Sequence record: MH460460.1
DNA: 64,000 bases
Direction: 5' to 3' (one strand)
Below are positions 13,468 through 17,686 of this stretch, piece by piece; the stretch's first letter is position 1, and each line of letters begins with the position of its first letter. The position numbers were made by a program, and so were the translations under genes. A model generated the notes under the pieces. It searched no databases. It saw only the letters and a list, made by a program, of their open reading frames with translations, and was not told the DNA's origin.

Positions 13468-13877
13468 AGCGGCCTCAATGCAAATGTGACGGAATCTTTA
13501 TCTTCCAGCGCCGGAACTCGCCATGCAATATAGCATTCATAAGTTTGCTGTTCAGATCGAAAAACTCTCACATAAACGTTTGTGATATCATTGGTTAATC
13601 CGTTATCAGGATCTTGTAGCGCATCGCGAATGTGCGTTTGAATCCATCCAGCAGTTTCATCGTCGAACGGTTCAAACAAATCTTTGTAGACAAGAGAACC
13701 AAATTTCTCACGCCATTTGCGTGAACCTTTACGCGTACCGACAACGAATAAAACTTTTTGAGTAATGCTATCCATATCCTGAACAGTATCACGCAACTCC
13801 ATTTTGATATCCATGTTGATATCAGAATAGACAGCTTCGTTAGCCGGGACGTTAACGCGTTTTGTAATTATGCCCAT
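13464..13877 (-). CDS. Baseplate wedge/sheath initiator (gp25/GPW-like)
   Basis: Motifs YSDINM, GSRKWREKFGS and LFEPFD are typical of gp25; sits between the PAAR and gp6-like genes. Confidence 0.85.
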   Translation of the reverse strand: MGIITKRVNVPANEAVYSDINMDIKMELRDTVQDMDSITQKVLFVVGTRKGSRKWREKFGSLVYKDLFEPFDDETAGWIQTHIRDALQDPDNGLTNDITNVYVRVFRSEQQTYECYIAWRVPALEDKDSVTFALRPL

Positions 13878-14167
13878 TAGCCAAATCCTACGTTACCTGA
13901 ACCGTTGCTTGCCGTATCGCCGCAAGTGTTGCCGTCGCCAGCACGCTGCGCAGGTTTTCCATTCACAAAAACAGTTGCGCCGCTTGTAGCGTATCCGGTA
14001 TGCGGAGGCTTTTTAGGTTTCCAGTGTGGTTGATAAGGATCGCCATCACGCACGACACCCAAACCGTTCACAAAAACATTTCCACTTGCGCCAACAGCAA
14101 CAACAGGAAAATATCCATTGTGACCAGTAGTTTGATCAGCACCTAAGCGAATAACAGGTTTTCCCAT
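13877..14167 (-). CDS. PAAR spike-tip protein (T4 gp5.4-like)
   Basis: VIRLGAD..GH, NVFVNG.GVVRDGD and VFVNGKPAQRAGD..TCG repeats. Confidence 0.92.
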   Translation of the reverse strand: MGKPVIRLGADQTTGHNGYFPVVAVGASGNVFVNGLGVVRDGDPYQPHWKPKKPPHTGYATSGATVFVNGKPAQRAGDGNTCGDTASNGSGNVGFG

Positions 14168-14193
14168 TAGATTTTCTCCTTTTATTACTGGTT

Positions 14194-14200
14194 AAATTAG
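14194..14200 (-). promoter_or_regulatory. Candidate late promoter CTAATTT
   Basis: cACTAATTTAA lies 27 nt upstream of the PAAR start, right after a terminator. Confidence 0.55.
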
Positions 14201-14203
14201 TGG

Positions 14204-14241
14204 CAGAAACAAAAACGGGCAGCACAAAGGCCACCCGTTTT
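14204..14241 (-). terminator. Rho-independent terminator
   Basis: ACGGGTGGC-CTTTGT-GCTGCCCGT (two G-U pairs) followed by TTTTTGTTTCTG. Confidence 0.8.
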
Positions 14242-14485
14242 CGTATCAAATTTTTCATGCGGAGTTAAAAGTTGGACGCGCATAACCTCTATAGAATAAC
14301 GGCGCAGCAATCGGTTTATAGCGCTGGCAAAGAGTGTTCGCCCAATCGCATCCAATCTACACGCCGCGCCATTTGGAGAGGCGCACAAAATCCCACGTCT
14401 GAAATTTTGCTGTCCATAGTATACGCGGAGTTACCCGCAAGGCATCGCAATCAAATCTGAATTTTCGGCAAGAAAGTGTCGCTGT

Positions 14486-14638
14486 CTAACACATCCCTCG
14501 AACGTGCGCTTTGCCGTAAGCCACGGCGTAGCCAGACGCGAGCGCTTTCGGCTTGCTCGCACATTGTTTTTCAATGCCTAATCTTACTCCTTGCCAAAGC
14601 AAGATTAGTAGCGACATAAGGAGGATGAGATCTTTCAC
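14486..14638 (-). CDS. Small putative membrane peptide (50 aa, GTG start)
   Basis: TAAGGA RBS before the GTG; MKDLILLMSLLILLWQGVRLG has a hydrophobic N-terminal segment. Confidence 0.4.
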   Translation of the reverse strand: MKDLILLMSLLILLWQGVRLGIEKQCASKPKALASGYAVAYGKAHVRGMC

Positions 14639-14712
14639 TCTGAATGTTTCCTTACGTCTATTGTGACACGGTGCCACAAATTCTTTTTACAGATTAGCCA
14701 CCATAGAACCAA

Positions 14713-14820
14713 TCATTCATTTTTATTTTCCTTACCGCAATCCATAATCCACGAACGTAATTCTTCGCGAGACATTTTAGAAGGCGGTGTAAAAGTTTTG
14801 GAGTTAAGCGCTCTATCCAT
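14713..14820 (-). CDS. Small hypothetical protein (35 aa, MDRALNSKTFTPPSKMSREELRSWIMDCGKENKNE)
   Basis: Manual translation. It is in frame with the upstream gene after that gene's TGA and has no clear SD. From memory it resembles short phage proteins of the type AL.S..FT.P.G.SREE.R..I. Confidence 0.45.
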   Translation of the reverse strand: MDRALNSKTFTPPSKMSREELRSWIMDCGKENKNE

Positions 14821-14859
14821 CCGGTCGATATCAATCAGAACGACCGGATCTACAAGCGC

Positions 14860-15171
14860 TCATTTTTCACTTGCACGCATCATGCAGTCTTGCGCTTCGA
14901 GAAGTTTGCGAAGTCCCGCACTCTTCTCTGCGCTGTCAGAAATTTCTGCATCAAGCGTTTCTGCGATATGGCGAAAACATCCGGCGATTCCCATCTTTTT
15001 AAGATCGCCAGTGAACCGCTCAGGATCGAAGTAGTTCATAATCGGATTGGAATATTCTTTTTTACCGCCGCCCCAATCGCCGATTTCTTTAGGGCCACAC
15101 ATTCCAGTCACACCCGGAGTCTTACTCGGATGATCTTTATTATCGGTTATATCAATGCGTCTTTCCGACAT
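14860..15171 (-). CDS. Small helical protein resembling the Acb4 (anti-CBASS nucleotide sponge) family
   Basis: AAAGGA RBS. NPIMNYF...LDAEISDSAEKSAGLRKLLEAQDCMMRA matches the widespread phage family PIM.YF.Y.HLP...EKSAGLRKLLEAKDC.VRA. The ORF is solid; the Acb4 label is from recall. Confidence 0.6.
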   Translation of the reverse strand: MSERRIDITDNKDHPSKTPGVTGMCGPKEIGDWGGGKKEYSNPIMNYFDPERFTGDLKKMGIAGCFRHIAETLDAEISDSAEKSAGLRKLLEAQDCMMRASEK

Positions 15172-15194
15172 TTCATTTGTTCCTTTTCAGTAGG

Positions 15195-15880
15195 TAACAT
15201 CCTGCATTACGCTGTTAAGGGCAACGTAATGCAAGTTGTCTTCCCAACTTTCCCGACAAAAGATTTTCATTTCGCTTCCCGTTTCCCAACTAAAACAGGT
15301 CTAAGCGAAAACTATCTTCGAAGCCTCGCAGGAGGTCTTGCAAATACGCGATGGACGGCGTAGGCAATTTACGATCTTCGGTCTGCGGCAGTTATTTGTT
15401 AATCATCTTTCGATGACAAGAATAGGTCGTGAATTAGCTACCCACACTTTAAACTTCCTGCTAACTAAGATTCGAATACGGAAGTACCGCACGGGATATT
15501 CGAATCTAAATCCTCGTTTTGGACGATTGGCAACAGCCTGCTTGATAGCACCACCCACATGCACCGCTATCAGTATATTCACTTTACAGATTTTAAAATG
15601 AACATACGGAACCGATGAAAAAGATTTCCCGTTTATGCCCTCATACGAAAACATAAACGGCATTCTTTCTTGCTGTCTGCAACAAATCGGTTTCTCTGTC
15701 TGGAAGAGAAACAGCGATTTTCGTTTCCCCCTGTTAGGAGCGGCTTGGGAGCCTACAAGTGAAACGGCTGCCAGTGTTATATCCCCACTTTACAGATTCG
15801 TCCTCCCGCAAAAGAACTTTATGAATCCAACTGGCTAGGGTCTAAAGACAAGGCGGGGAAAAAGTAAAACCGCCTTGCCC
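15195..15880 (-). ncRNA. Candidate large structured non-coding RNA (about 690 nt), family unknown
   Basis: No credible ORF in a 736-nt gap. At least 9 stems (6-18 bp) with GAAA, UGCG and GUAU tetraloops; G-U pairs form only on the minus strand. Confidence 0.6.
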
Positions 15881-15907
15881 TAATTAATTACTATTTACAG
15901 ATTTACC

Positions 15908-17686
15908 TTAGAAAATTTTACGCTTAACCAGAGAATAATAAACTTCGAACGGAGCACCATACAAAGCTGGCCCGCGTTGAGCACGCGCTGTCACTTTGCC
16001 TGTATGAATGTTCAACGCAGTGATTTCTACCGTTGGCTGTTTCGGTCGAATAGTTTCATACACCGGAGTGTTGAATGTCGGATAATCATTGCGTAAACGT
16101 TCGATACTTTCTTCCGCTTCTTTCGACGGCTGCGGGAATTTAAAACGAATCTCAGCAGCGCGTTTACCGCGAGCGATAGTCACATAACCTTTCTTCAAAG
16201 GCACGCCGTTATACATCAGATAGGAAGAAATACGACGAGCGATACCAACCACCTGATCGTAAATCGTATCATCCATTACCTGCGCGGAAAAACGAATGCC
16301 AGTAGGTTGCTGTACCATTGCCAGACGCAAACCAGTGTTGAAATAACCTTCGTCAATCAGGCGACGGAAATAATCATACATCGCTTCGGTTTTGGATGCG
16401 ATAGCCGGAATGTGCAACGGCGGAACGTCAGCTTTCGGTTCAACAAAAGTTGGAGTCTGAACCGGAATAGACATTTTCACAACCTGCGAAACTTTATAAG
16501 TGTTTTCCAGAATCGGAGTTGTTTTGATCACAACTTTATTCTTGATTGCTTTCTTATAGTTTTCGTCAGTTGTCAGTGAGGTAAACAGACGATAATCAAC
16601 CGGGCTTGTATAGCCGCTAATGATATCGCGCACCAGCGTTTGAAGTTTTGCCTGCGTGTCAGCGAACACAACGCGACTGCGATTAGGCGTGCTCGGAGAT
16701 ACCGGGAAGAATGCACCGTAAACAGTTTTGATATTGCGCGGTGAACCTGTTCCAGTAACCTTAGTTGCGTTTTCCAGTTTCGGAAGTTTTTCAGCCTGAC
16801 CAACAGGCGCAACTTTCGGTGTACTGCGAATCGCTTTACCTTTAACGTAACTTGTCGCTTCCGGATCAACAGACAGATTACTCAGCAGATTTTTAACTGC
16901 CGAACTATCCATCCAACTCTCAATCGGAACTGCGAGGTTGTGCGCGAGATAATGTTTCTTACGACGCATCAAAACAACAGTGCCTTTAGGAATAACAGGC
17001 GACAGAATTTTTTTCTTCGTTGTTCCGACATACGCGAACGTATCAGTTTTCAGATCGGACACTTGACCGAACGGAGCGGTGAATTCAAGAGCGCCCATAA
17101 TGCTTTGCGCTGTTTCGTGACCGCGAACAATAAACTGAATGCGTGGGCTATCTTTCAGACGCAGATCGTAACGGTCTTTGTTGAGATAGGTAATCTTAAT
17201 CAGATCGCCTTTCTCAAGTTCCAGATCGTATTCATCGGAAGCATCATCAATAGCCAGTTTCTTACCAGTGTATTTGAGATACTTCGGTGCCGCACTTTCG
17301 GAACTAACATCGAGCACATCAAATACACGTTGAGAGTTTTCAGCGTACTCACGCGCCGCCAGCATTGCAGTAGCGAGGTTAAAGCTGATAGATTTTTCTT
17401 TCGGTGGAACTAACTGAACATGAACGCTACTACTTGCACTCATGAAAACAGTTTGATTATCGTCGCGAGTTCCGGCGAAGTGCATTCCAGTAAGGCGCTC
17501 TACAGCGTCAGCACTAATGCTTTCGTGTGCGATACGATCACCGGGAACAATCTCAGTGATTTCGCCACGGTGCCAAACATAGGCAGCGCGTCCATTGTGA
17601 CCAATAAAGTGATCGCCCACTTTAGAGATTGACCGTGGGATAATCCCTAAGTCAGAAATAACGCGAGAAGGTTTTTGAACAATCAT
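15908..17686 (-). CDS. Hypothetical protein (592 aa) with an internal copy of the recurrent YxxYxG domain
   Basis: Long ORF with AAGGA RBS; segment KYLKYTGKK...LEKGDLIKI resembles domains in three other genes. Confidence 0.7.
   Translation of the reverse strand: MIVQKPSRVISDLGIIPRSISKVGDHFIGHNGRAAYVWHRGEITEIVPGDRIAHESISADAVERLTGMHFAGTRDDNQTVFMSASSSVHVQLVPPKEKSISFNLATAMLAAREYAENSQRVFDVLDVSSESAAPKYLKYTGKKLAIDDASDEYDLELEKGDLIKITYLNKDRYDLRLKDSPRIQFIVRGHETAQSIMGALEFTAPFGQVSDLKTDTFAYVGTTKKKILSPVIPKGTVVLMRRKKHYLAHNLAVPIESWMDSSAVKNLLSNLSVDPEATSYVKGKAIRSTPKVAPVGQAEKLPKLENATKVTGTGSPRNIKTVYGAFFPVSPSTPNRSRVVFADTQAKLQTLVRDIISGYTSPVDYRLFTSLTTDENYKKAIKNKVVIKTTPILENTYKVSQVVKMSIPVQTPTFVEPKADVPPLHIPAIASKTEAMYDYFRRLIDEGYFNTGLRLAMVQQPTGIRFSAQVMDDTIYDQVVGIARRISSYLMYNGVPLKKGYVTIARGKRAAEIRFKFPQPSKEAEESIERLRNDYPTFNTPVYETIRPKQPTVEITALNIHTGKVTARAQRGPALYGAPFEVYYSLVKRKIF

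Follow-up and report, generated by a model that had tools for sequence, protein, structure and literature searches.

What does the small gene JA13_104 of the Dickeya jumbo phage vB_DsoM_JA13 (MH460460.1, 254 kb) encode, and is its product a sponge that sequesters a nucleotide signal of bacterial immunity? We addressed this question within a 64,000-nucleotide (nt) stretch of the record, hereafter the window, whose coordinates become record coordinates by adding 62,000. A previous sequence-only reading of the window had correctly outlined the open reading frame (ORF), and had tentatively taken its product for a member of the Acb4 anti-CBASS sponges with a diverged binding motif. We find that the hairpin family to which JA13_104 belongs is unrelated to Acb4 and, as judged from profile comparisons, is a remote relative of the Acb2/Tad1 hairpin proteins, the link being transitive. 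By analogy with these proteins, JA13_104 would be a small accessory hairpin protein of an Acb2/Tad1 sister family, acting as an oligomeric signal sponge whose dinucleotide pocket has been lost or re-tooled, a reading to which we give about even chances.

The hairpin family and its relatives

The C-terminal part of JA13_104 (residues ~38-101) matches two protein groups without assigned function, PHROG 5120 (E 3e-12) and PHROG 1761 (E 9e-11), and a hidden Markov model (HMM) of the core family that was built without JA13_104 scores it at E 1.4e-19. Among 1.84 billion representative proteins, the family profile matched at least 5,620 clusters at 50% identity with E ≤ 1e-3 (2,688 with E ≤ 1e-10), while a second, word-indexed search returned at least 8,000 family clusters at 90% identity. 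The 46 relatives found in the first protein search are mostly 61-66 amino acids (aa) long. By tblastn, the domain is present in 122 phage records, from phages of Erwinia (48), Acinetobacter (37), Vibrio (16), Dickeya (8), Alteromonas (5), Gordonia (4), and others. The PHROG matches and the 5,620 clusters bear out the view that the C terminus belongs to a widespread phage family.

This family is absent from Pfam and NCBIfam, and scans of JA13_104 and family members against both gave only sub-threshold hits to Occludin_ELL and DASH_Dad3, which are generic for helical proteins. Neither JA13_104 nor the family profile has a sequence match above chance in the PDB. Full-text literature searches for the signature of the second helix returned no paper whose text mentions the family, and it does not figure in the available part of Table S1 in the supplements of the paper on Acb2/Tad1/Tad2 diversity. 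It is one of the larger sets of small phage proteins that lack annotation. AlphaFold2 predicts residues 38-103 to be all-helical, with a mean pLDDT (predicted local distance difference test) score of 94.3 and helices at positions 20-39 and 44-64 of the 66-residue construct. Together, the model and the profile matches indicate that the C-terminal 62 residues of JA13_104 form a helical hairpin, a member of a very large phage family without assigned function.

Domain architecture varies across the family. In one member of 235 aa (P0137), the family domain spans residues 3-66 and is joined to a WDGH domain of Pfam (PF25311, E 2e-42), for which we found no solved relative and no literature, while other members have the domain duplicated in tandem or preceded by a long N-terminal extension. 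At least 15 residues precede the domain in 94 of 147 family representatives. JA13_104 has the extension of about 40 residues that had been noted from its sequence, as seen at the level of the ORF with its putative start, and the orthologues carry one too. Residues 1-36 are predicted to be disordered (pLDDT <50 in the full-length AlphaFold2 model), and the stretch directly N-terminal to the hairpin domain is conserved within the JA13 clade. An AAGGA Shine-Dalgarno-like site lies 10-14 nt 5' of the start codon.

The Acb4 assignment fails because neither profile nor structure comparison yields a match. Acb4 is the 96-aa gp1.3 protein of Bacillus phage SPO1, the origin that the sequence-only reading had rightly given for it. 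It belongs to Pfam PF13876, consists of three antiparallel strands flanked by helices in a fold resembling a dsRBD (a domain that binds double-stranded RNA), and binds four cyclic GMP-AMP (cGAMP) molecules as a tetramer (10.1101/2024.12.30.630793). JA13_104 matches no Pfam family at E ≤ 10, hence not PF13876, and none of the 46 family members matches PF13876 at E ≤ 1. No Acb4 entry is among the Foldseek matches listed for the full-length and domain models. The confidently modeled hairpin has no β-sheet core, in contrast to the α-β-β-β-α arrangement of Acb4. Together with the lack of a PDB sequence match, these results rule out Acb4 identity. An Acb4-family sponge, i.e., a tetramer binding cGAMP or cyclic UMP-AMP like SPO1 gp1.3, has only general traits in common with JA13_104 (small phage protein, widespread family, accessory location), and its probability is practically nil. 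The oligomeric sponge role of Acb4 serves as a functional analogy only. The annotation should be corrected from "Acb4-like" to "Acb2/Tad1-hairpin-like, function unknown."

The family is instead linked to the Acb2/Tad1 hairpin proteins of Pfam PF24729. Sub-threshold PF24729 matches occur in 6 of the 46 family members (best E 0.021; curated threshold 27 bits), and the positive controls pass, with 59.6 bits for JBD67 Acb2 and 34-90 bits for a set of IMG/VR proteins. JBD67 Acb2 was taken by the accession and coordinates in PMC10312549, and confirmed by PDB 8H2J "p26" (E 7e-22) and by PF24729. The IMG/VR comparators are ORFs that enclose matches to a short, degenerate DNA pattern in that database; the pattern stands for a peptide of helix 2 that several shorter Acb2 homologues tabulated in the supplement of 10.1101/2025.08.24.671296 have in common. 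All 10 comparators tested are PF24729 proteins (E 8e-26 to 4e-8, with the whole Pfam model covered). A 44-sequence comparator alignment (A7) matches Acb2 homolog 43 (9PTQ, E 9e-12), T4 Vs.4 (7UQ2, E 5e-5), and Tad1 (E 8e-4), and the comparator profile matches the PaMx33/JBD67 Acb2 clade with a probability of 96-97% (E 1e-9 to 1e-10).

When the JA13 family was compared by hhalign with 87 IMG/VR PF24729 proteins, the two aligned over 62 columns, i.e., the entire domain, with a probability of 87.8% and E 3.3e-6. The standard tool gave a probability of 91.2% and E 9.9e-7 (A4 against A7). As controls, a reversed template and 30 column shuffles were compared, with E 0.18 for the former and, at best, E 0.045 for the latter. 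A Foldseek search of BFVD returned several proteins labeled Acb2/Tad1 hairpin (E 0.24-2), which is a weak lead to PF24729, as are the sub-threshold Pfam matches and the Tad1 chains listed at E 7-9 in the PDB. Two of three large protein searches returned near relatives only and no bridge. Since the link is transitive and lies below Pfam/HMMER detection, we do not file the family as a member of PF24729.

Coordinated changes in the JA13 subtype

The N-terminal part of the JA13_104 domain departs from its family at several conserved positions. We determined column shares on 292 family members, aligned to an HMM for which only members of 60-64 aa were used. Pro50 of JA13 stands at column 11, where 95% of the members have an aromatic residue (Tyr in 79%), and columns 13 (His, 97%), 14 (Leu, 98%), and 15 (Pro, 93%) are Arg52, Phe53, and Thr54. 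Further on, Ala63 stands for the Ser of column 22 (95%), Gly64 for the Lys/Arg of column 23 (73%), and Cys65 for the Pro of column 24 (73%). Measured on these aligned members, the departures that the sequence-only reading had singled out (FDPERFT for FxYxHLP and AGCF for SKPF) are real. It was also right that the second helix is retained: 14 columns in this helix have a share of 93-100% in the family, and JA13_104 keeps the near-invariant residues, with the sole substitution of Gln94 for the Lys found at core column 53 in 97% of the family.

This substitution is coupled to the N-terminal changes. Gln occupies column 53 in 8 of the 292 sampled members (P0001-P0005, P0024, P0039, and P0043), all of which are without His13/Leu14, a pair that is essentially always present among Lys-type members. 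The Gln-type subtype includes JA13/JA11, JA29, two metagenomic relatives among the jumbo phages, a more distant relative that occupies the same slot, and three proteins of 71-72 aa. Such coupling suggests, at the level of the alignment, a single functional site to which both column 53 and the N-terminal motif contribute.

Where would this site lie on Acb2? In the PaMx33 protein, Tyr11 stacks on the base of cyclic dinucleotides and Lys26 forms a salt bridge with the phosphate, with contributions from Leu14 and Pro90, while Arg67 and Thr74 serve a separate cyclic-trinucleotide pocket (PMC10312549; 10.1101/2025.08.24.671296). We mapped these residues by chaining two hhalign alignments through PF24729 proteins to JBD67 Acb2. 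Acb2 Tyr11 corresponds to a conserved PF24729 Tyr and, through it, to family column 11, which is Pro50 in JA13_104. Lys26 corresponds to a conserved basic PF24729 residue and then to column 22 or 23 (Ala63 or Gly64); hhalign sets the Ser of column 22 opposite this basic residue, the register being uncertain by one residue because the family lacks ~4 residues ahead of helix 1. The counterpart of Thr74 is the invariant helix-2 Arg, Arg88 in JA13_104. Both the stacking Tyr and the salt-bridging Lys of the dinucleotide pocket are thus absent from the aligned JA13_104 positions. By this mapping, the two diverged segments align with those that line the dinucleotide pocket of Acb2, and the JA13 subtype appears to have replaced the residues aligned with the canonical lining of the ligand pocket. 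The subtype is a natural experiment, in which helix 2 is frozen while the segment lining the pocket has undergone coordinated replacement, and it could reveal the surface that bears the conserved function. The family assignment and the coupled changes of the JA13 subtype are new and useful.

The extreme conservation of helix 2 lends itself to another interpretation, which is the main rival to the sponge reading. The hairpin could be a protein-binding module, in which helix 2 would dock onto a conserved protein of the host or the phage, a contact tuned by the N-terminal segment. The 93-100% conservation of 14 helix positions, seen in phages of Enterobacterales, Vibrio, Acinetobacter, Alteromonas, and Gordonia, would fit such docking, as would a domain that is fused to other modules and found behind variable extensions. 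However, bona fide Acb2-type sponges show similar conservation of the equivalent helix, from which both their oligomer core and their pockets are built (PMC10312549). Moreover, the aromatic, His, and Lys columns resemble a ligand pocket and covary, and no partner protein is conserved beside the family gene. We regard protein binding as possible, at odds clearly short of even.

The replacement of several near-invariant residues at once, and the variation of position 50 (Pro in JA13, Gln in JA29), might also be expected of a decaying copy, in which the motif changed under relaxed selection after loss of function. This is at variance with the selection on the gene. The ratio of nonsynonymous to synonymous substitution rates (dN/dS) between JA13_104 and its JA29 orthologue is 0.11 overall, and the corresponding ratio of proportions (pN/pS) is 0.11 in the domain and 0.40 in the N-terminal extension. 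Apart from position 50, the altered motif segment is nearly identical in four distinct orthologues, the frame is intact in all of them, and a hairpin in the leader of the gene (see below) is maintained by compensatory changes. This shows that JA13_104 is maintained under purifying selection and is not decaying, and we hold relaxed selection to be an exceedingly improbable cause of the motif changes.

Genomic setting and leader RNA

JA13_104 lies close to structural genes. On the strand of the gene, the order is a 592-aa gene (15908-17686), terminator-like hairpins, a leader of ~450 nt, JA13_104, ~690 nt without annotation, a PAAR spike gene (13877-14167), and then gp25-like and wedge genes. 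The 592-aa gene is assigned to Pfam PF20294 in relatives. The slot between this gene and the PAAR spike gene (window 13877-17686; compared at loci L133, L135, and L137) is variable and holds one to five small genes: four in Erwinia phage Yoloswag, four or five in a 31-kilobase (kb) metagenomic contig, and one called gene in JA13, JA29, and a 193-kb metagenomic contig. Since its content differs among relatives, the slot deserves the name of accessory island that the sequence-only reading had given it.

The position between the conserved 592-aa gene and the PAAR spike, gp25-like, and wedge genes would suit a baseplate protein with a minor role in structure or assembly, whose function accounts for its place. 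Several observations argue otherwise. The content of the slot varies among close relatives, and the terminator-like hairpins and a leader of its own part JA13_104 from the upstream gene. In Dickeya phage AD1, the family gene is among small early-region genes near a DNA methyltransferase, at ~17 kb, and both AD1 and many Erwinia phages have a family member in a non-structural region near 17-19 kb. In Morganella and related lambdoid prophages, the family gene has the lysis cassette on one side and the terminase on the other. Because the family gene occupies such unrelated accessory positions elsewhere, the context suits an accessory, host-interaction role and speaks against a function in the baseplate, which we deem very unlikely. 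In the paper on the JA phages, neither proteome nor transcript data cover JA13_104. AD1 represents a second lineage of Dickeya jumbo phages, and the family domain is there the C terminus of a 150-aa protein (locus L134, 3752-4204).

The leader of JA13_104 contains a hairpin that is unique in the window (Table 1). Its 22 predicted pairs include 4 with compensatory changes on both sides (in 4 phages), and its minimum free energy is -27.4 kcal/mol (z -4.8). At the DNA level, the hairpin is 92% identical to that of a relative whose ORF shares ~45% protein identity, i.e., it is better conserved than the ORF. Because its G-U pairs fit the sense strand only and no U-tract follows, the hairpin reads as a leader RNA element rather than a terminator, and it is probably a regulatory or processing element. 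Scans of the slot gave no match to an RNA family in Rfam and no tRNA; the promoter scan picked up a single weak sigma-70-like site.

Other elements of the slot are conserved in part. A piece of 27-28 nt within the two terminator-like hairpins at 15629-15712 is 93% conserved in distant relatives, and so is, at 90-93%, a short stretch just upstream of the start of the PAAR gene (14192-14220). Both are possible regulatory sites. Downstream of JA13_104, we noted two unannotated ORFs. The nearer one resembles gp110 of Yoloswag, where gp110 likewise lies downstream of the family member; in JA29, the ORF is matched by two pieces that overlap, which may mean a single disruption of the JA29 copy.

Table 1. 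Positions of JA13_104, its parts, and nearby elements in the window
Feature	Coordinates	Strand	Description
JA13_104 ORF	14860..15171	-	ATG start, 103 aa and stop; from the ORF list; annotated as hypothetical protein in MH460460.1
N-terminal extension, residues 1-40	15052..15171	-	Gly/Pro/Lys-rich, predicted to be disordered
C-terminal helical-hairpin domain, residues 41-103	14863..15051	-	Two short N-terminal helical turns, then two long antiparallel helices (AlphaFold2, HMM, hhalign)
YFDPERFT, residues 47-54	15010..15033	-	Diverged N-terminal motif; aligns with the Acb2 Tyr11/Leu14 pocket segment
IAGCF, residues 62-66	14974..14988	-	Start of helix 1; Ser and Lys/Arg in most family members; near the column aligned with Acb2 Lys26
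Second helix, residues 81-100	14872..14931	-	Near-invariant; retained except Gln94 for Lys
5' leader hairpin	15189..15249	-	Ends ~20 nt before the JA13_104 start codon
Two terminator-like hairpins	15629..15712	-	Just 3' of the 592-aa gene, separating it from JA13_104; pattern scan only
Unannotated 46-aa ORF	14694..14834	-	Directly downstream of JA13_104; like Yoloswag gp110 (tblastn E 3e-6)
Unannotated 63-aa ORF	14486..14677	-	Hydrophobic stretch; tblastn: JA29, 79% over 58 aa; L135 (193-kb metagenomic relative), 67% over full length, E 4e-22

Possible signal sequestration and comparison with known sponges

The sponge hypothesis has a precedent for this family. A published structure-based screen for sponges lists, in its Table S2, two proteins (93 aa and 78 aa) with the helix-2 signature of JA13_104. 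Both were chosen because AlphaFold2-multimer predicted hexamers for them (listed as "dimer/hexamer" and "hexamer") whose interface pockets are positively charged, and because HHpred gave no known function; both were transformed successfully (10.1101/2025.07.12.664507). Kinship with Acb2/Tad1 would explain why such a screen picked the family up. In that study, both proteins were negative against type I and type II Thoeris, a CBASS that signals through 3'3'-cGAMP, and two Pycsar systems (10.1101/2025.07.12.664507). The hypothesis has thus already been posed for the hairpin family, and is unsupported for the five signals screened. The two proteins share family and helix-2 signature with JA13_104, but are members from other phages and not of the JA13 subtype.

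How might JA13_104 act? By analogy with Acb2, which is a hexamer, it would homo-oligomerize and sequester a small host signaling molecule in pockets at the subunit interfaces. Of these pockets, the one at the place of the cyclic-dinucleotide site of Acb2 would be lost or rebuilt in the JA13 subtype, while the invariant surface of helix 2 would be kept, including Arg88-Lys89, of which Arg88 aligns with a cyclic-trinucleotide position of Acb2. The conserved stretch upstream of the domain may add to a new pocket, much as the N-terminal residues of Acb2 homolog 43 do. A more specific version seems doubtful to us, though it merits consideration. Here, the family would be a third branch of Acb2/Tad1 hairpin sponges, directed at an immune or regulatory signal other than 3'3'-cGAMP, 3' cyclic ADP-ribose (3'cADPR), histidine-ADP-ribose (His-ADPR), cyclic CMP (cCMP), or cyclic UMP (cUMP); the Gln-type pocket of JA13 would have been rebuilt for another molecule, and the leader hairpin would control expression. 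The rebuilding in this version refers to the coordinated changes at five or more positions and the clade-specific conserved stretch upstream of the domain.

Several results weigh against the sponge reading or the kinship on which it draws. The first is the inactivity of the two family members against five signaling defense systems, which is equally what a protein-binding module would be expected to show. In addition, JA13_104 has no PF24729 match, and no tested family member reaches the curated threshold of 27 bits. In the PDB, Foldseek found no significant match for the full-length and domain models, with nothing below E 1; Tad1 chains appear at E 7-9 over 48 columns, a single hairpin being a weak Foldseek query, and no Acb2 chain is among the best 50 matches. 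Aligned by hhalign with JBD67 Acb2 alone, or with 16 aligned sequences from the PaMx33/JBD67 clade, the family shows no significant similarity (E 0.37). Finally, since they come from a motif-based DNA scan, the PF24729 comparators sample one part of that family. The idea of a sponge family proposed by the sequence-only reading therefore survives in part: the hhalign comparison makes JA13_104 remote kin of a sponge family other than the one named, while the Acb4 identity is lost and the five-system screen offers no encouragement. We retain, as the preferred reading with about even chances, that of an oligomeric sponge of an Acb2/Tad1 sister family. Placing the family beside Acb2/Tad1 gives a testable structural hypothesis.

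Among known systems, Acb2 (PaMx33/JBD67 and T4 Vs.4; PF24729; 8H2J, 7UQ2) offers the closest comparison. Both are small accessory phage proteins of similar core length, in which a short N-terminal segment with an aromatic residue (typical of the family) is followed by two long antiparallel helices, an arrangement in which the AlphaFold2 domain model agrees with the published description of Acb2 (10.1101/2025.08.24.671296). They also share a conserved Pro, an acidic residue, and Lys-Ser at the start of helix 2, and a significant profile-profile similarity via intermediate PF24729 proteins. The hexamer formed by Acb2 has its counterpart in the hexamers predicted for hairpin-family members (10.1101/2025.07.12.664507). 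In contrast, there is no direct HMMER/Pfam match between the two, the invariant helix-2 signature of the hairpin family differs, and the loop before helix 1 is ~4 residues shorter. The positions of Acb2 R67 and T74 are Ala/Pro and the invariant Arg in the hairpin family, and the equivalents of Tyr11 and Lys26 are absent in JA13.

Tad1 (7UAW, 8KBF) shares the helical-hairpin superfamily, although the Foldseek similarity alone is not significant. It differs by an additional N-terminal β domain, and binds glycocyclic ADP-ribose (gcADPR).

The remodeling proposed for JA13_104 has its best parallel in Acb2 homolog 43 (9PTQ), which binds 3'cADPR and inhibits Thoeris, with extra N-terminal residues contributing to the pocket (10.1101/2025.08.24.671296). 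Homolog 43 has a clear PF24729-type sequence, unlike JA13_104, and its added elements are β-strands, none of which is predicted in JA13_104. It nevertheless shows that the hairpin scaffold can switch ligand by N-terminal remodeling, and in the JA13 clade, too, the N-terminal motif is remodeled and directly preceded by a conserved stretch.

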